Below are positions 17,142 through 26,570 of a DNA stretch of 64,000 nt, piece after piece; the first letter of the stretch is position 1; every line of letters starts with the position of its first letter. Source of the DNA: Epithemia pelagica (Eukaryota; Protista; Bacillariophyta). The notes under the pieces were generated by a model, which was not told the origin of the DNA, ran no database searches, and worked only from the letters and a program-made list of their open reading frames with translations. The stretch is from the NCBI GenBank assembly GCA_946965045.2, contig OX337228.1, forward strand, positions 1,736,001 to 1,800,000, given 5' to 3'. The position numbers and the translations under genes are program-made.

Positions 17142-20100
17142 CTATGAGCCTTGTTCCACCGCCGCGGCAAGTTCGACAAGCGCTTCTTCCACCAATGAGC
17201 TCAACACACCTTGTTCTCGTAAATGCAAGGACAGTACATGATCGTCATAGTCGTGCGCAATCAACTGCAGGTTCTCTTGCTGGTTGGATGCTGGCTGTTG
17301 TAGTGGTGTCGACGACAACAAACTCACTTGTCGGACATCTTCCGGACAATAACGACCGTAATGGATGCGATACCGAGTTCTTTGCTTGCAAGACGACGAC
17401 GCTGTTCCTTGTACCGATTCCAAAATTTGGGTTTGATAGTCTTGTCGAAGGGTGGAGGTGAAATCGCATCGAGTAATGGCGGGATAGGATTGCAAATCAA
17501 TTTGGGGGGTAAAACACAAGACACCGTGCGCCAAGGAGGAAAATCGGAGTGCGGCACCTCCACCCATGGAATCTCCCAAGTACAGGATACAACGGTATCC
17601 TGCCACTCGTTGCGTCAATTCCTTCAAATAATAGGAATATCCCTGCCATTGACATGTGGGATCTTGACTATACCACGAAAAGGCCGGATCCAACACTTGT
17701 AAGACATGCCACTTGCTTTGTGGAGGTGTCCCACCAATGGTCGTGTTGTCCTTTGGTTCTTGTTGCTGCTTTGACAAGAAACTTTGAATGGTGCCATTCC
17801 ACTCCGGTCGCGCCAGGCCCGATCCCAAACTACTAAAGACCACCAACAAATTGCATTCGGCCCGTGCTTCAAGGTCGTTTGGTTTATCGTGCCAAAAGGC
17901 AAATCGGTCTTTTCCACCATGCCACCATGACGAAAAGGCTTCCTCCAACAGCACAGATGGTACTTGTGCTGCACCAGTGCTACTCTCTTTCTTCTTACCC
18001 AATCTTGTGGATGCCTCATGAGCCTTGAACAAGGCCAAAAGGAAACAAACCGAAAATTCATTCACGGGCAATAACGATCCCGCCCGTCGAGCCAAACTGG
18101 GAGATTCCATGATCCACATGGTACCCGTCAATTGATACAAAGCCTGGACATCACTCAAATCAGTACTAATACTAGCAAAATCCTTCTTTTCTTCATCATC
18201 CTTGTCTGTCTGGGCTCGTTTTCGCGCGGCCTTGGCGGTGGCCAATACCTCTTGTTTACGCTCACGTGACGCTGGATTCAAGAGTGCGGCAATCAACTCT
18301 TGGTACATGTCATGCTTTTCTGTTTCCGAACAATTCAAAAAGGTTAAAACAAACGTCATGGCAGCCATGTAATAATTCGGTTCCTGACGTCCCTGCTTTT
18401 GTTGTTCCTCCCACAGGTGCAAATCAAATCGGGTGGTGTAATGGGGATGACCGGCAACGTCGTCCGTCGAGTCATTTGGTACGTCTTTGCTCATGACCAA
18501 TCGATAGAGTTGGTGACAAGCCGCTCGGGCATATTCCTTTTCGGCAATGGTTTGCGGTGACTCTTGTTTTTCGTCTTCTCCTTCTTGTGCAAACATGTGT
18601 TGTTCTTGAAACCAATCACGAGCTAGGGTAAAGTACAAGACGGGTCGATCTTGAAGACTGAGATTGGCCAAACCACGATGAAAGACACGGACGTCAAAAA
18701 CAATGGCGGATCCGGCCGGAACAAGTGCCCGAATGGCCCGTTCATGACAGGGTGAGACCGCGTGTTGTGAATTCTTGTCCTTGTCTTGTTGCTGTGCCCA
18801 CAAGACGAGATCTGGTGCCCATTCATTGTAATAGGCATCGACATGAGAGCGAGGGACGAACTCGGTTGTTCCATTTTCTTCGTCAACATTAATGAGGGGA
18901 ACAAACACATTGAAACAATGGGTCGGATGATGCTTTTGAGGGTTGGCAAACAAGGAGGGACCATCGCGATGCCAAAATTGTGCCGGTGGTACTGGATCCT
19001 CTTGAGAGGCTCGTGCAAAGGCATGGACTACACCTCCATGCAATACCTTGAGCGTCGGAAAGGACGATGCTGCATCTCCTTCTCCTTCGGTTGGAAACAA
19101 GAGACGACCAAGTTGTTGCGCAAGTTTTTGAGCCAATTGTGCCAGGGGAGACTGTGAATCCGACAAGATGCCATAGCGATTGTCCACGCGATGTCCTGGT
19201 CGTTGTCGAACATGGACCATGTCGAACGCCTCTGCTCCGTTCACGGACAAACCCAAAGGATCCAATTTGTCTCGTTGCAATTGTTCCAAAGCCTTGTCTG
19301 CTTGTTGTCGATAGGAGTCGAGTAGCGTATCCATGGTAGAGCTGCCGTCATGGTTATCCTCGGAATACAAAGACGTGAGCAAGTCGGGGACAATGACCAT
19401 GCCATATTCGTCAAAGATTTGCCCAATTCGTTCATCTACCTTGTCGTCGTCATGATCCACCCGGACCGTGGTCGTGACTGTTTCCATGGTGATAGGCTTT
19501 GGGGTGCTATCCCGGTTGTCCTTCTTTTCTGACGGCGACACAACGGCTTGTGAATCTTGCTGTTTGTCAGGTCGACGAATCAAGGCTTTGGTCGCTCGCT
19601 CCAGTGCCTCGATTTGTTCCTTTGTTTGCTTCGATGCATTCGGACTTGTTGGAAAAGACTTGTCGAAATGAAGTTGTCCTAATCGATATATGTCCCTCCA
19701 TTGGTCCCATAAGGCTTGACACGCTTGTTGAACATGACAAAAGGATATGTTCTGGTCCGAGTTGGTGAGTGCATCTTGTGTCGGTTGTTGCTGTTGTTGT
19801 TGAAGGATGCCTCGTAAACTCCGTTGCAAACCAGATTTTTTAAATCGCGACAGGGGTGGACAATATGGCCAATCCTGCTGTAATCGTTGAACCGTTTGCC
19901 ATACCATTCGAGCACTAGGGGCTGTCGTATTGCGATTGTTATTCGTCGAGTCATTTTGGTGATCCATATAGTCCTTCAAGACCTTGGATGTGGATTGCAA
20001 GTCAAACCCTTGCAAGGCCTTACGAAATTTTCCATGATACAATCCTTCTCGTATCCGTGTGACTTCAATCAAGACGAATTGGGCTCGAGGAACTACCAGC

Positions 20101-20651
20101 AAATTGTCACAAACGGCCGTTTCGGTCATCCAGAAACAATCGTAACAATTTCCTCGTAACAAGGTCAAGAAATTATAATCGTCCATTCCTCCCTCCAATG
20201 CCAAGATCAAATCGCGCCATCGATCGCTCACCAATGGATTCCGACCAACCATGGAATTACCACCACCGGATCCAGCCTCCGCCACGGCAATGTCTTGAAT
20301 ATTAAAGTAGGCACCAAAGTTGGATCGAAATCGTTTCCATAACCGTACATCTTCCTCGGGCGAAACCAAGACCAGTTCTTTGGTATAATGACAACTCAAG
20401 TGGCTGTTGTTGCTGCTAGTGTTCTCATCCCCATTCGTCTCGGAGATGATCTTCTCCTCATCATCGTCATCGTCTTCATCGGCCTCTTGCTGCCATAGGG
20501 GATCCAACAAGTGCGAATCTTTTCGTGCCGCTTGCGCCAATCGTTTCCAAAATTGTAGTGCATAAACAGCAGTGGCATTCGCTCCCAATCGTTCAATTTC
20601 TGGATCGTTGCTAATATCCAAGGCAAAGCCATCGATGATTTCCTCCTCCAT
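17142..20651 (-). CDS. Multidomain protein: PBDC1/Chp1-like domain + PhyH-type Fe(II)/2OG dioxygenase + alpha/beta hydrolase
   Basis: One uninterrupted ORF. N-terminal domain: SNDPEIE...DYNFLTLLR...VPRAQFVLIEVTRIREG. Middle: WHRDG...NVFVPL..VDEENGTTEFVPRSH...AGSAIVFDVRVFHRGLAN..DRPVLY. C-terminal: LVVFSSLG...LGDSMGGGAAL...DDH. Confidence 0.8.
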   Translation of the reverse strand: MEEEIIDGFALDISNDPEIERLGANATAVYALQFWKRLAQAARKDSHLLDPLWQQEADEDDDDDEEKIISETNGDENTSSNNSHLSCHYTKELVLVSPEEDVRLWKRFRSNFGAYFNIQDIAVAEAGSGGGNSMVGRNPLVSDRWRDLILALEGGMDDYNFLTLLRGNCYDCFWMTETAVCDNLLVVPRAQFVLIEVTRIREGLYHGKFRKALQGFDLQSTSKVLKDYMDHQNDSTNNNRNTTAPSARMVWQTVQRLQQDWPYCPPLSRFKKSGLQRSLRGILQQQQQQPTQDALTNSDQNISFCHVQQACQALWDQWRDIYRLGQLHFDKSFPTSPNASKQTKEQIEALERATKALIRRPDKQQDSQAVVSPSEKKDNRDSTPKPITMETVTTTVRVDHDDDKVDERIGQIFDEYGMVIVPDLLTSLYSEDNHDGSSTMDTLLDSYRQQADKALEQLQRDKLDPLGLSVNGAEAFDMVHVRQRPGHRVDNRYGILSDSQSPLAQLAQKLAQQLGRLLFPTEGEGDAASSFPTLKVLHGGVVHAFARASQEDPVPPAQFWHRDGPSLFANPQKHHPTHCFNVFVPLINVDEENGTTEFVPRSHVDAYYNEWAPDLVLWAQQQDKDKNSQHAVSPCHERAIRALVPAGSAIVFDVRVFHRGLANLSLQDRPVLYFTLARDWFQEQHMFAQEGEDEKQESPQTIAEKEYARAACHQLYRLVMSKDVPNDSTDDVAGHPHYTTRFDLHLWEEQQKQGRQEPNYYMAAMTFVLTFLNCSETEKHDMYQELIAALLNPASRERKQEVLATAKAARKRAQTDKDDEEKKDFASISTDLSDVQALYQLTGTMWIMESPSLARRAGSLLPVNEFSVCFLLALFKAHEASTRLGKKKESSTGAAQVPSVLLEEAFSSWWHGGKDRFAFWHDKPNDLEARAECNLLVVFSSLGSGLARPEWNGTIQSFLSKQQQEPKDNTTIGGTPPQSKWHVLQVLDPAFSWYSQDPTCQWQGYSYYLKELTQRVAGYRCILYLGDSMGGGAALRFSSLAHGVLCFTPQIDLQSYPAITRCDFTSTLRQDYQTQILESVQGTASSSCKQRTRYRIHYGRYCPEDVRQVSLLSSTPLQQPASNQQENLQLIAHDYDDHVLSLHLREQGVLSSLVEEALVELAAAVEQGS

Positions 20652-21131: not shown

Positions 21132-21794
21132 ATGATCAAGACTGTGGATCGTTCTTCTTCGTCGTCTTTTCCTGGACGGCCGCGACTCACAACCTATTTG
21201 AGCCTCGTTGTTGTGGTCATGTCTTGTGTGACGGTGGTTGTGGAAGGCCTTGAGATGCCATCTCCGCAGGTCGATACCTCTTACTTTCAGCCTAAAATGG
21301 CCACAGAACAAGACCATACCAAGAAGGACTCCAAAGAGGAAGGTGCACTCGTTGTGGTACGAAAGGAACCCCACCAAGAGGATCTGGTCGTCTCCAGAGA
21401 GTCCTCCTCCTCGTCATCTTTCAATCTTACTCAACATGAACCATGCTCCTCGTCGTCCACGACTCCAGCGTCCACCAACACTTCCTCATACCAGGCCCGA
21501 TCCGATGCCTCCAACAACCAGGAAATGGTCGACTACTTGTCACAATTGGAACAACGATTGACACGTATTGAAGATTCGCAACGTGACTTGCTTCGCATGC
21601 GAAATGAAACGAGATCGTTTGTCTTGGAGTCGATTCGGTTGATGGTGGTTTCAGCAATACCCATGATTTGCTTCGGTGTCTTGATTGCAACCTCAATGTG
21701 GGTTCTCTTTCACTTGATTGTGTGGCTCTCGGATCTTTTCTTTTTTCTAGAGTATGGTTATTTGAGCAAAAGAGTTGGAGGCTTATCGTGCTAG
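21132..21794 (+). CDS. Hypothetical membrane protein (N-terminal hydrophobic segment, coiled coil, C-terminal TM region)
   Basis: ATG-initiated 220-aa ORF with LSLVVVVMSCVTVVVEG, a heptad segment LSQLEQRLTRIEDSQRDL and a long C-terminal hydrophobic stretch. No family recognised. Confidence 0.6.
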   Translation: MIKTVDRSSSSSFPGRPRLTTYLSLVVVVMSCVTVVVEGLEMPSPQVDTSYFQPKMATEQDHTKKDSKEEGALVVVRKEPHQEDLVVSRESSSSSSFNLTQHEPCSSSSTTPASTNTSSYQARSDASNNQEMVDYLSQLEQRLTRIEDSQRDLLRMRNETRSFVLESIRLMVVSAIPMICFGVLIATSMWVLFHLIVWLSDLFFFLEYGYLSKRVGGLSC

Positions 21795-22214: not shown

Positions 22215-24023
22215 TCAATCTTCTTCTTCTTCTTCGTCTTCTTCTTTGTGTTCCACCTGTTCATTGGTGTCGTCATGGTCCTCCTCTTCCTCTTCTCCTG
22301 GATAGGCGAGAAAGGCTTCCATGGATGGTCCAAATTGGACCAAGAAAACGGATGCTTCATCATCTACCGGCATGGGAGGAATATAGGTTCGAAGGACCAT
22401 GCCCAGTTCCGTCGTTTCATCGTCGTCCTCATTTGTTTCTGCCTGGTTTAGATCCGTTTCCGAATCGGGTGATTGTGACATTGTCTTGGACGTTTCCTCC
22501 TCGTCCTCACGACTACTAGTGATGGTGGTGGCGGTGGCGGTGGCAGAAGGTTCGGGTGTGACAAAGGGCAAATCAATACGTTCTCGAGTTTCCTCCTCCT
22601 CATTTACCTGCGTCGTCAAGTGTACCGTCGGATAGGAAAGGGGTTCAAAACACAGCTTCGGAATGGCAAAGCTATTAGTTGTTGCAGTTCTTGTGGTTAC
22701 CAATGGTGTCTCATTGACACACGACTCTTCTTGTTGTTGTTGTTCCATGGCGAGCAAGGCTTGTCGAATCTCTGGAGGCAAGGGTTGAACTCCGGCTGGA
22801 CCCTGATTGGTCCACACATTGACCAAAAAGGTGATGCGTTTCGTGTCACGAGGTGGAGCGGTGGTGGTATTAGTTGTTTGGAATGGTCGTGACAGGCCGG
22901 CATGATAGGGTGCCCCATGCAACCATTGTCCATCAAAGACAATATGTCGACCCATGTGCGGATAACTCACCCACATTTGATCCATCCTACCATGGGTTTC
23001 GTCGTCCTGCTGGTCATTGTGATAACAATGAGGAACCACCAGAGTAGGCATACTACTGCTCATTGACGTGTCGTTGTTCTTGTCGTCGTCGACAGGGTGA
23101 TGGTGGTTAAGGCCCGTCAAGTAGGTGACGGTCGACCAAGTAGGAAAGAGTCCCACTCCAAAAGACTCTGCCACGACTTCATCCTTGTCAAAATGCAAAT
23201 CAATCGATGGTGTTGTCGTTGTTGTGGTGGACAAGTCTTTGACTTGAACCCACCACTCCACTCCACCTCCATCCAATGCACAAGAGGAATCCATATGTTG
23301 TTGGCCAATTTGACAAGCGACGCGTTCCAAGGCACACATGGTCGTATCGTCTCGAAGAATGTCGTTCTGGGTCGTCGTTTGGTGGAAGGGAATCCAAAAG
23401 GTTTCTTTGGAGTGTTGTACCAATTCCATGGCTTGCTGTCGCAGCAAGAGACTGAGTGAACTCGGTGTTTGTGGATCATTCTCTGTGGAGGAAGCTAGAA
23501 GAAATTGAGGAATTTGATAGGCACGTCGTTGGTGCGGCGCAAACAAGGAATGGTCCATCTCGTCTTTGTGGTTGTCGTCGCCGTCTGGTTGGATCTGTGG
23601 TGCCTCGGTTGTGCATGGCCAGAGGGACTGGACATACAACCGAGAGGGCTCGACAAGTTGACAGGAAGGACTGGTCAAGGTGCAGCAATCGCAATACGCT
23701 CGTGCCGTTCCCAAATACTGTACGGCCAAAGACTTGTTCTTGTTGTTGGATGGGTTGTCATCGGCTGGTTCGTCTTGGTCGTCCTTGTCGTTGTAGCCAT
23801 GACAGTACATGGCACAAGCATGACACACCACCCACAGAGCGCCACTGTCGGGGTGATTTTCATCAGTTTTCTGCTCGAGAGCCTCGTCGTCGTCGTCGGC
23901 TTGTTCTTTGGTGTTGCTGCCTGTGGTAGGATTCGCAATGGCATAGATATCTTGCAAGACGGGCGTCGTTCCTGTCAAGGCCCGTGTACAATAACAAGAA
24001 TACGACATTTCCTCTACTCTCAT
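22215..24023 (-). CDS. UBR-box-like zinc finger fused to a 2OG-Fe(II) oxygenase domain
   Basis: N-terminal SCYCT...QDIYAI...VVCHACAMYCHG...YCDCC. C-terminal GVEWWVQ, DLHFDKDE (HxD), PTWSTVTYLT, VFDGQWLHGAP and RITFLVNVW. The tail is acidic. Confidence 0.75.
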   Translation of the reverse strand: MRVEEMSYSCYCTRALTGTTPVLQDIYAIANPTTGSNTKEQADDDDEALEQKTDENHPDSGALWVVCHACAMYCHGYNDKDDQDEPADDNPSNNKNKSLAVQYLGTARAYCDCCTLTSPSCQLVEPSRLYVQSLWPCTTEAPQIQPDGDDNHKDEMDHSLFAPHQRRAYQIPQFLLASSTENDPQTPSSLSLLLRQQAMELVQHSKETFWIPFHQTTTQNDILRDDTTMCALERVACQIGQQHMDSSCALDGGGVEWWVQVKDLSTTTTTTPSIDLHFDKDEVVAESFGVGLFPTWSTVTYLTGLNHHHPVDDDKNNDTSMSSSMPTLVVPHCYHNDQQDDETHGRMDQMWVSYPHMGRHIVFDGQWLHGAPYHAGLSRPFQTTNTTTAPPRDTKRITFLVNVWTNQGPAGVQPLPPEIRQALLAMEQQQQEESCVNETPLVTTRTATTNSFAIPKLCFEPLSYPTVHLTTQVNEEEETRERIDLPFVTPEPSATATATTITSSREDEEETSKTMSQSPDSETDLNQAETNEDDDETTELGMVLRTYIPPMPVDDEASVFLVQFGPSMEAFLAYPGEEEEEDHDDTNEQVEHKEEDEEEEED

Positions 24024-24266
24024 CCATTGAATCCAGGAAGGAAACGACGACAAAACGTTGTAGTGCGGGGATGATCCAAAACGTGATGGATGATACTCCT
24101 ATTATGGATAATGGATCTTCTGGTGTTGTGAGGAAAGATCCAAGGAAAACTGAGACACATAGCTTTTGGAGCTACTCCTATTATTACTCCAACTCTACCC
24201 ACTCTATTATACCCCACCATAGTCTCATGGAGTGACTCTCTAGTATGGGTGCAGTCTTCTCGCTAC

Positions 24267-24545: not shown

Positions 24546-26258
24546 TCATCTTTTGGAAGTGGTGATGACAAGGGTCGTCGTTTTTGGCTCGAGTGAACCA
24601 ATGTGCTTTCGGGGATCATTGTCACCGTCCTTACGGTCTTCTTCTTTTTGTTGTTGCTGCTGCTGTCCATGGATGGTTTCAGTCTCGTTTCCTCCTTCTT
24701 CTTGGTTTTCGTTTTCCTCCGGCTCTTCCTCTTCCTCATTACTACAACTTTCTTCTTCTTCGTCGTCGTCATTGTCGTCTTCCAGGGATTGCGTCAAGGG
24801 TTCTCGGAGTGCCTGGCTTGTTTTTTGGACTGCTCTCACAAATGGTACACAGGTCCATTGTAGCACTCGTTTCTTTTTGGTAGCAGTACTTCTTCGACTA
24901 GTACTACTAGGACTGTCACCGTCCATACTGCCTGGGTGTGTCCTGTTGGACGAACCACCATCACCATGACCGAGGGAAGGTGAATGGAAGGATGGTGGTG
25001 ATGATGGCTGTGGCTGGTCGTTCTGTGGTTCTTGTTCTTGCAGCCAGAGGAACCGTCCTCCCTGATTCAAGACGGTACGAACAATGCTTTGAGAAACCAA
25101 ATTGCGATGTCGTTTGGGAACTTGCTTGTACAATTTTTTGTTGTGATCGACAATTCGACGATAGACAATGTTCCCGGGATGCTTGTTTATGAGACCCCCT
25201 CGTCCACACAAGACGTCGGCATTGGTGGGTGTCGACGCAATGGACATATCGTCCTTTCCCACAGCAGCAGCAGCAGCAGCAGCAGCAGTACCTTCGGCAT
25301 CTTGGACGTTGTGTAGATCCGACGAGCTGGGTGTTCTCGTGCTGGACGAGGATGGAGGAGGAGATGAATGGGATAGAGGAGACGTTGGACGACTTGTGGT
25401 TGTGGCAGGGTGTGCCGTGCTGGAAGAAATAGCAGTCGTAGCAGCATTGGTTGTTGAACGTTCTGTGAGCGCACTCTTCCAATCCGTTCCAGTCGCTGTA
25501 GTGTCGGGACCGTTGGTCGGTTGTTGCACAGAGAAGGAGGAGGACACGCACGAGATTGGTGGTGACTGGTGTATCGTGGCATTGTTTGCTTCTTGCTGTT
25601 GCTGCTGCTGTTCTTCTTCTTCCACTCTGGATTGAAGCAAGCTGGCTGCAAAGAGAAGTTTGAGTCCAACTTGCGCTTTATCACTCTCTCCCTCTTCCTG
25701 TTGTGGCTGGTAGGAGCATGGACGAAATGCTGGATGCTGCTGATTGAGATTCGAGGTGGAGGTGGTTGGTGACATTGTTGTTCCCTGTGGTACTCCATCT
25801 GCAAGTCCACAACAGACGGAGGGACCTTCCTGCGTCACTCTCCGAGTGGTCTTGGAGGCTCGTGGTTGAGGATCCGACTCCTTCCTCGTGTTTGAGCCAA
25901 AGGAAGACCAACCGTCTTGTCCTTTGTGAATCATTATTCCAGCAGTTGTAGGAGTGTGCTGGCCCAAGAAAGAAGATGATGATTTCATGGTGGATGGTTC
26001 GGCGGAAGAGGATGGTAGTTTCAGCAAGGCAGCGGTACCTTCCAACAACGAACTGGTGGTAACATTGGCAAAGACATGGTGTTGTTCCTTCTGACCAGGG
26101 GAACGACTACGCTTGGAGGTTGTTGTCGTTGTTGTTGTTGTTGTGGATGATTCTGTGTGGTGAATGGTGAGTTCCGAAGTATGAAGAAATGAATCCGAGG
26201 GATGATTATTATTTCTTTCACTGCTTCTGGTTGTCCCCGCCAAAGGATTGGGCGACAT
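24546..26258 (-). CDS. DUF6824-domain protein (diatom-expanded family) in a low-complexity backbone
   Basis: DVLCGRGGLINKHPGNIVYRRIV...SIVRTVLNQGGRFL...KTSQALRE. The start codon is uncertain (ATG at 26258 or 25988). Confidence 0.8.
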   Translation of the reverse strand: MSPNPLAGTTRSSERNNNHPSDSFLHTSELTIHHTESSTTTTTTTTTSKRSRSPGQKEQHHVFANVTTSSLLEGTAALLKLPSSSAEPSTMKSSSSFLGQHTPTTAGIMIHKGQDGWSSFGSNTRKESDPQPRASKTTRRVTQEGPSVCCGLADGVPQGTTMSPTTSTSNLNQQHPAFRPCSYQPQQEEGESDKAQVGLKLLFAASLLQSRVEEEEQQQQQQEANNATIHQSPPISCVSSSFSVQQPTNGPDTTATGTDWKSALTERSTTNAATTAISSSTAHPATTTSRPTSPLSHSSPPPSSSSTRTPSSSDLHNVQDAEGTAAAAAAAAVGKDDMSIASTPTNADVLCGRGGLINKHPGNIVYRRIVDHNKKLYKQVPKRHRNLVSQSIVRTVLNQGGRFLWLQEQEPQNDQPQPSSPPSFHSPSLGHGDGGSSNRTHPGSMDGDSPSSTSRRSTATKKKRVLQWTCVPFVRAVQKTSQALREPLTQSLEDDNDDDEEEESCSNEEEEEPEENENQEEGGNETETIHGQQQQQQKEEDRKDGDNDPRKHIGSLEPKTTTLVITTSKR

Positions 26259-26570
26259 GAGTTTTAACGCATTCGTATCGAATAGGGGGCCAAGAGGAGA
26301 ACGAATAGAAGAGGATATCAGTAGTATTTGTTTTGTTGATGGCCGGCTTCTCCTGGATTGAGTATGAAACCCCGGTTGGCACCACACATTTTCTAGAAAA
26401 TGTGTGGATGGAGCAGAAAAAAAGAAATCTTTCAAGTCGTATATTGGTCGCTCTATTAGAGCGACTGCAGAAAGTTCTTTGGCTGGCTCACTCCCGCGGA
26501 TTCGGGAATCGACAATGACGTGTTTTACAGTTCTTGTCCTCCGTCTCATCTCATTTTTGGAGCAATTTTG

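Follow-up and report, generated by a model that had tools for sequence, protein, structure and literature searches.

A UBR box and a putative 2-oxoglutarate/Fe(II) oxygenase on one polypeptide in the diatom Epithemia pelagica and other ochrophyte algae

To our knowledge, almost every described role of the UBR box is that of a substrate reader in ubiquitin ligases. UBR7, a small protein that carries neither RING nor HECT, combines its UBR box with a PHD finger, that is with a module other than a classical E3 domain. A link between UBR boxes and oxygen is known from the Cys/Arg N-degron systems (PCO with PRT6 and BIG in plants, ADO in animals), where an O2-using enzyme and a UBR box serve one pathway (PMC13720641), the oxidase being a thiol dioxygenase and the box sitting on a separate E3 ligase. 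A third group for comparison is formed by the PHD/EGLN prolyl hydroxylases, which are 2-oxoglutarate (2OG)-Fe(II) oxygenases. Here we describe a gene on the minus strand of a 64,000-nucleotide stretch of the diatom Epithemia pelagica (contig OX337228.1, positions 1,736,001 to 1,800,000; hereafter the window, in whose numbering all positions are given). Its product very probably carries a UBR box and a 2OG-Fe(II) oxygenase on one chain. It differs from UBR7 in the partner of the box, an oxygenase standing where UBR7 has its PHD finger. Its likeness to the Cys/Arg N-degron systems is one of concept only: the oxidase of the latter has another fold, and the window protein holds both parts on one chain and includes no E3 ligase.

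The coding sequence (22215..24023, minus strand) was delimited from the list of open reading frames, the translation and collinear homologues as a single exon of 602 amino acids plus a stop codon (22215-22217). The underlying frame runs uninterrupted over 22215..24053, with its first ATG at 24023. There is no sign of an intron, since between its first Cys and its C-terminus the protein shows all conserved blocks of the homologues in their usual sequence. A database record with 99% identity to the window protein is 580 residues long, has its start called 22 residues later and carries no name. Contigs of three public runs, all from one study and possibly the source of this DNA, span the stretch in full; they differ from it at 3-4 single bases, and have no insertions or deletions against it and no joints. 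The differences, at window positions 22324 (G>A), 23223 (T>C), 23454 (G>A) and 23613 (G>A), leave the zinc-ligand and catalytic codons untouched and likely represent allelic or strain variation. Four parts can be told apart in the product: a UBR-box homologue, an oxygenase domain, a C-terminal beta module and an acidic tail. An earlier note, made from the letters of this DNA, had read the protein as a UBR-box zinc finger fused to a 2OG-Fe(II) oxygenase. The motifs on which it relied (C10-Y-C12-T, C67-H-A-C70-A-M-Y-C74-H75 and C111-D112-C113-C) are all present in the translation, and it had placed the catalytic residues exactly, with the H277 codon of H277-F-D279 starting from 23195 and that of the distal His, H369, from 22919.

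The first part, residues 10-121 (23661..23996, minus strand), is a UBR-box homologue of the subfamily-2 type, whose last ligand is Cys. A family profile built from 40 aligned relatives (alignment A1, from which the column counts given below are also taken) matches the UBR box of human UBR4 at E 1.9e-14, and likewise a UBR4-like protein, UBR5, FBXO11 and plant BIG; it gave no match to UBR boxes of the UBR1/2 type. Pfam zf-UBR (PF02207) is matched by nine of the 40 members, with P0026 and P0056 above the curated cut-off. Taken alone, the window protein gives no match to PF02207 at E<=10; a UBR-only profile built without it aligns its residues 10-127 at 47.7 bits. Since the family profile matches UBR4 and the window protein aligns to the family's UBR profile, membership is by transitive homology. 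These comparisons support the Cys/His module as a UBR box of the UBR4/5/FBXO11/UBR7 kind, degenerate in the window copy. As had been anticipated from the letters, no ubiquitin-ligase domain accompanies it: neither RING, HECT, hemiRING nor F-box was found by Pfam on the same chain in the window protein or the 40 homologues. Because a ligase domain is absent from every member, the protein is not an N-recognin E3 ligase.

The UBR box of UBR4 binds three zinc ions, Zn1 on two Cys and two His, and Zn2 and Zn3 on seven Cys, with Cys in place of the His of UBR1-3 (PMC10687169). The binuclear Zn2/Zn3 core is kept in the window copy as C12, C67, C70, C74, C111, C113 and C121, each in a column conserved in 37-40 of the 40 sequences, and by alignment to UBR4 these seven Cys are the putative Zn2/Zn3 ligands. 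The spacing C-x12-Q...CxxCxxxCH...CDC...C is shared with UBR4 and the other subfamily-2 boxes (UBR5, FBXO11/UBR6, UBR7 and BIG), as is the Cys at the last zinc ligand. The window box differs from these in standing outside any E3 ligase, in two acidic insertions and in its first zinc site. One insertion is an acidic low-complexity stretch at residues 33-62 (23838..23927, minus strand), a gap region of variable length in A1 with a predicted local distance difference test (pLDDT) score of 51-59 in the structural model; the other, acidic and Asn-rich, at residues 79-100 (23724..23789, minus strand; pLDDT 58-62), is absent from most homologues. At the Zn1 positions the window protein has I29, P32, H75 and N78, so that three of the four ligands of the C2H2 site are replaced. 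In the 38 sequences of A1 with letters at these columns, C is found in 37, C in 37, H in 38 and H in 33. The idea that this loss is unique to the window protein, the sole case among those 38, was dropped, as similar losses occur in a wider set of 196 UBR-bearing relatives: 169 retain all three sequence patterns tested, and the CxxC pair and/or a Zn1 His is missing in several (e.g. P0086, P0126, P0139, P0231, P0237, P0240 and P0247). With the seven Cys kept and Zn1 repeatedly lost, constraint acts on the binuclear core, and the family can dispense with Zn1. Because its C2H2 site is gone, the window box would be expected to carry two zinc ions, not three.

The central part, residues 160-411 (22791..23546, minus strand), was delimited by structural alignment of models as a double-stranded beta-helix domain like that of the 2OG-Fe(II) oxygenases. 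AlphaFold modelled the full-length protein with pLDDT 75 and a predicted template modelling (pTM) score of 0.81, and the domain alone (residues 160-415, alignment A2) with pLDDT 82 and pTM 0.84. For both models the best 50 Foldseek matches are all 2OG oxygenases or uncharacterised entries of that fold, the top ones with probabilities of 0.95-1.00. E-values ran from 2e-5 to 1e-3 for the domain model, with a best template modelling score by target of 0.62 (PPHD of P. putida), and were about 1e-4 for the full model. VIA-align of the full model, applied to the Foldseek list, gave Z 10.1 for P. putida PPHD and 9.9 for PHD2, the aligned part being residues 160-411. An exhaustive comparison of the domain model with 48,161 chains likewise returned, in its best 50 rows, only 2OG oxygenases or chains of the same fold. 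Its first four ranks are protein prolyl hydroxylases, namely Dictyostelium PHD (Z 11.5, the top score), PHD2 (10.8), PPHD (10.5) and Trichoplax PHD (10.4), and these are followed by ColD (10.3), an unknown protein (10.2), a BsmA homologue (10.1) and a viral collagen P4H (10.0); the tool itself regards gaps below 1 Z as ties. Neighbours by feature and shape in the Atlas are unnamed algal clusters first and 2OG-FeII_Oxy_3 clusters thereafter. For the modelled domain the assignment to the 2OG-Fe(II) oxygenase fold is secure; the label 'prolyl hydroxylase-like' is a best guess from the same models.

In 2OG-Fe(II) oxygenases the HxD/E...H iron triad is carried on strands II and VII, and the basic residue that binds the 2OG C5 carboxylate opens strand VIII; the putative active-site residues of the window protein follow this plan. 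The proposed Fe(II) ligands H277 and D279 (H277-F-D279, 23187..23195, minus strand) stand at the end of predicted strand 274-277 and are followed by an invariant K280-D281-E282. The proposed distal ligand, H369 (22917..22919, minus strand), lies in an LLHGAP-type motif on predicted strand 368-371. R396-I-T398 (22830..22838, minus strand), which starts predicted strand 395-404, is the proposed binder of the 2OG C5 carboxylate, of the RxS/T type. H277, D279, H360, H369, R396 and T398 are identical in 40 of 40 aligned sequences; outside the metal and 2OG set, K280-D281-E282, H360, a SKETFW motif and an EWWVQ motif are invariant as well. From this pattern we infer Fe(II) binding by H277, D279 and H369 and 2OG binding by R396/T398. 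With fold matches up to Z 11.5, an invariant HxD...H and RxT, and the profile matches to UBR4 and its kin, both halves of the architecture read by the earlier note are supported.

The PHD/EGLN prolyl hydroxylases (human PHD2, Dictyostelium PHD 6t8m, PPHD 4j25/4iw3 and Trichoplax PHD) resemble the window protein at Z 10.4-11.5 over 157-165 aligned residues, with the HxD...H...R layout on the same strands. At the end-points of the alignment with PHD2, residue 247 of the domain model stands opposite PHD2 393; provided that the final strand is ungapped, R396 would stand opposite PHD2 residue 383, which we take to be the 2OG-binding Arg of that enzyme. Against this likeness, identity is 7-13% and the window protein has no Pfam P4H or 2OG-FeII_Oxy_3 match. 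It also has an extended HxDKDE motif, a longer loop, of 26 residues, leading from the distal His to the Arg, and extra modules at both the N- and C-terminus.

The fusion recurs well beyond this locus. A word search returned 67 relatives, with E down to 2e-55 and all 'hypothetical', those with a named organism coming from Epithemia, Mayamaea, Thalassiosira exigua and Ectocarpus. Further searches added Seminavis, Cylindrotheca and Nitzschia (two being named 'UBR-type domain-containing protein' in UniRef) and the chrysophyte Epipyxis. At E<=0.001 the catalytic profile reaches 2572 cluster representatives, of which 454 remain at E<=1e-30. Among 381 collected sequences counted by type, a UBR box is present in at least 195 of the 261 with an H[FY]DKDE motif, the remainder being mostly N-terminally cut or carrying degenerate boxes missed by the pattern; it was found in none of the 104 with an HWDxDE motif. 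Named carriers of the HWDxDE type are haptophytes, dinoflagellates and a prasinophyte (Prymnesium parvum, Cladocopium goreaui, Durusdinium trenchii and Cymbomonas tetramitiformis), whose proteins are all 'uncharacterized'. These proteins share a homologous catalytic domain (best E about 1e-10 when searched with the window protein, with far stronger values from the profile) and differ in having no UBR box. A quick maximum-likelihood tree of 75 domains, drawn by random sampling of relatives and read without a root, separates the UBR-bearing group and the UBR-less HWDxDE group at a branch that reaches 99% in the Shimodaira-Hasegawa-like approximate likelihood ratio test (SH-aLRT), and pairs the window protein with an Epithemia protein (97% support). 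Single mRNAs carry the fusion too: among transcript-derived members it is seen in P0059 from Epipyxis and in P0016, an MMETSP entry flagged as complete. By these sequence comparisons, the UBR-oxygenase fusion is real and conserved across diatoms, brown algae and chrysophytes.

Two groups of sequences within this collection deserve separate mention. P0064 and P0065, from an AT-rich organism, have no UBR box and carry a His/Asn-rich insertion of about 130-190 residues that separates the EWWVQVK strand from the HxD motif; their position inside the UBR-bearing group of the tree points to a box lost secondarily or to truncated gene models. P0337, of the UBR-less HWDxDE type, has a bona fide 2OG-FeII_Oxy_3 domain further downstream on its chain (residues 440-535, E 4.8e-16), and represents either tandem oxygenase domains or two genes joined by the gene caller.

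Behind the oxygenase lies a family-specific C-terminal module, residues 458-578 (22290..22652, minus strand), delimited from predicted strands; it contains a long disordered loop, and its strands lie around conserved LPFV and PP motifs. Those at 482-487, 543-547, 559-564 and 570-573 are modelled with pLDDT of about 90. A profile of the module matches 244 of 252 relatives of the H[FY]DKDE type, versus only one of 36 of the UBR-less HWDxDE type, and on these profile matches the module travels with the UBR box. An Atlas feature search with the module gave no usable match. In three homologues, P0026 (residues 595-779), P0035 (residues 561-737) and P0097, a YecM domain (PF06185, E 5e-23 to 7e-25) follows the UBR-oxygenase unit. 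YecM is a metal-binding fold of unknown function, likely an enzyme. This three-part fusion is seen in Thalassiosirales-like members, one of them from Thalassiosira exigua; YecM is absent from the window protein.

What such a protein might do can be sketched from these parts. The explanation that we place first, and hold tentatively, is a protein hydroxylase to which the substrate is docked by the UBR box. The enzyme would be a soluble Fe(II)/2-oxoglutarate-dependent oxygenase of an unannotated family, with a catalytic core built like those of the PHD/P4H prolyl hydroxylases. Fe(II) would be held by H277, D279 and H369, 2OG by R396/T398, and with O2 the enzyme would hydroxylate a residue of a protein substrate. 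This substrate would be held by the UBR box, probably via its free N-terminus or a short peptide anchored on D112/Y110, and the family-specific C-terminal module may help to hold it.

The N-terminus pocket speaks to this proposal in both directions. In UBR4 the alpha-amino group of the bound ligand is held through Asp1715 and the main chain of Phe1713, and the side chain of the first residue contacts Phe1671 and Phe1713; no use is made of Asp1721, which corresponds to the Asp153 that selects Arg in UBR1/2 (PMC10687169). The earlier note had asked whether the acidic pocket residues are retained, and the answer is divided. D112 of the CDC motif, the counterpart of Asp1715, is invariant in A1, and the column of Y110, which corresponds to Phe1713, has Y or F in 35 of the 40. 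The position of Phe1671, on the other hand, is variable and falls on P21 in the window protein by ungapped spacing from C12 to Q24, and in A1 the stretch from CDC to the last Cys holds no conserved acidic residue matching Asp153. As judged from the alignment, the anchor for a free N-terminus is retained, and the specificity determinants of other UBR boxes are not.

Besides these missing selectors, several further results weigh against a box-docked protein hydroxylase. N-degron binding is often absent among UBR boxes of the UBR4-7 kind (PMC4506424). The window copy and several of the 196 relatives have lost the Zn1 site, and the box can therefore do without that part. In the exhaustive comparison the prolyl hydroxylases lead the small-molecule oxygenases (ColD, the BsmA homologue and HrmJ, Z 9.7) by only about 1-1.5 Z. 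The catalytic-domain profile, when run against PDB sequences, gave chance matches only and no oxygenase. Across the 40 members the best oxygenase signal in Pfam is 2OG-FeII_Oxy_5, at E 0.1 in two. PF13640 was tried as a sequence bridge and rejected: hhalign of the catalytic profile against the P0337 domain (residues 330-541) gave a probability of 0.1, the match in P0337 being to its separate second domain. Nor was an RNA run for Epithemia pelagica found among the public runs. The single window protein gave nothing in searches of Pfam, of NCBIfam and, by phmmer, of PDB, the sole line being a chance PPP4R2 match on the acidic tail. Because it matches no library by itself, both domain assignments are built on family profiles together with predicted structure.

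The foremost alternative, though we judge it rather improbable, is an oxygenase acting on a small molecule or nucleic acid, in which the UBR box would be merely a structural, oligomerising or regulatory zinc module. ColD, the BsmA homologue and HrmJ all score near the prolyl hydroxylases, and AlkB/FTO-type chains follow at Z 8.4-9.1. A structural role for such a box has a parallel in FBXO11, whose UBR box is reported to form zinc-mediated domain-swapped dimers, according to a title cited in PMC10687169. The addition of YecM in some Thalassiosirales orthologues and the repeated loss of the Zn1 site would also sit easily with this alternative. It has to contend with the fact that UBR boxes are known only as protein- or peptide-binding modules (PMC4506424), with the invariance of the Asp in CDC, and with the four top structural matches all being protein hydroxylases.

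More doubtful is the proposal of the earlier note that the protein is an oxygen- or iron-sensing N-degron device, in which the UBR box would read particular N-terminal residues and O2-dependent hydroxylation would set the stability of such proteins through a separate E3 ligase; this is a special case of the box-docked protein hydroxylase. The conserved alpha-amino anchor (D112 and Y110) would suit it, as would the presence of the oxygen sensors PHD2 and Dictyostelium PHD among the closest folds and the precedent of plant oxygen sensing via N-degrons through PCO, PRT6 and BIG (PMC13720641). It is opposed by the absence of any E3 domain by Pfam and of a known partner, by the lack of conservation of the side-chain selectors of UBR1/2 (Asp153) and UBR4 (Phe1671), and by a window Zn1 site that has lost three of its four ligands; structure, moreover, does not separate protein hydroxylases from small-molecule oxygenases beyond about 1 Z. 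The related proposal of a one-chain reader-writer in ochrophytes, in which the UBR box would capture particular N-termini and the oxygenase would hydroxylate the captured protein in step with the supply of O2, Fe or 2OG, is likewise unlikely in our estimate.

Several PHD-like enzymes hydroxylate proteins of translation. A still less probable alternative is an enzyme that hydroxylates strongly basic proteins of the nucleus or ribosome (histones, ribosomal proteins or translation factors), in which the box would be UBR7-like and acidic parts would attract the substrates. PPHD, which is paired with EF-Tu, is among the best structural matches, and acidic sequence is present in both insertions of the UBR box and in the Glu/Asp-rich tail (residues 579-602, 22218..22289, minus strand; taken from the translation, model pLDDT <50). 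Composition is the sole argument here, however, and acidic low-complexity sequence is common in diatom proteins, the neighbouring genes included; no nuclear signal or chromatin domain was found in the window protein. A pseudoenzyme, that is a catalytically dead oxygenase fold serving as a binding scaffold, is very improbable, for although the sequence is very distant from characterised oxygenases, none of its metal and 2OG residues varies in the 40 sequences, which span diatoms, brown algae and chrysophytes, and pseudoenzymes rarely keep them.

Returning to the box-docked protein hydroxylase as the preferred explanation, its interest lies first in the architecture. The earlier note had considered that this architecture might turn out to be common and already characterised. 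Common it is within ochrophyte algae, where the searches recovered it in diatoms, Ectocarpus and Epipyxis (the 195 or more of 261 counted above), but literature searches for a UBR box joined to an oxygenase found no description in searchable papers. Each domain is of a known kind; those papers do not describe their combination, the unannotated oxygenase family or the C-terminal module. If true, an O2-, Fe- and 2OG-dependent enzyme supplied by a UBR box throughout a conserved family would represent a new use of the UBR module. It would also offer a candidate post-translational sensor for diatoms, which live with chronic iron limitation and shifting oxygen. Were the reader-writer proposal to hold, the outcome would be an N-terminus-directed route for oxygen, iron or carbon status, distinct from both the HIF-PHD and the PCO/ADO Cys-N-degron systems. 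The split between UBR-fused and UBR-less branches provides a natural experiment on the contribution of the UBR box, and direct testing is feasible, with genetic tools for some diatoms and an intron-free gene.

Among the neighbouring genes no functional link to the studied gene was detected. The next gene but one (17142-20651, minus strand) encodes a fusion of PBDC1 (E 6e-8), a PhyH-type 2OG oxygenase (E 1.5e-13) and a hydrolase. Paralogy between it and the studied gene was considered and rejected, BLASTP giving no significant alignment (best E 3.8), and the two are unrelated 2OG-oxygenase fusions lying within 1.6 kb of each other. A 220-residue open reading frame (21132-21794, plus strand), convergent with the studied gene, has a sub-threshold match to p24/emp24/GOLD (E 2.2e-4, 21.8 bits, cut-off 25.9) and a hydrophobic stretch at its C-terminus. 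The upstream neighbour (24546-26549, minus strand) is a low-complexity protein of 667 residues with one DUF6824 domain (E 2.3e-20, residues 445-504) and with poly-Ala, poly-Gln and acidic runs.

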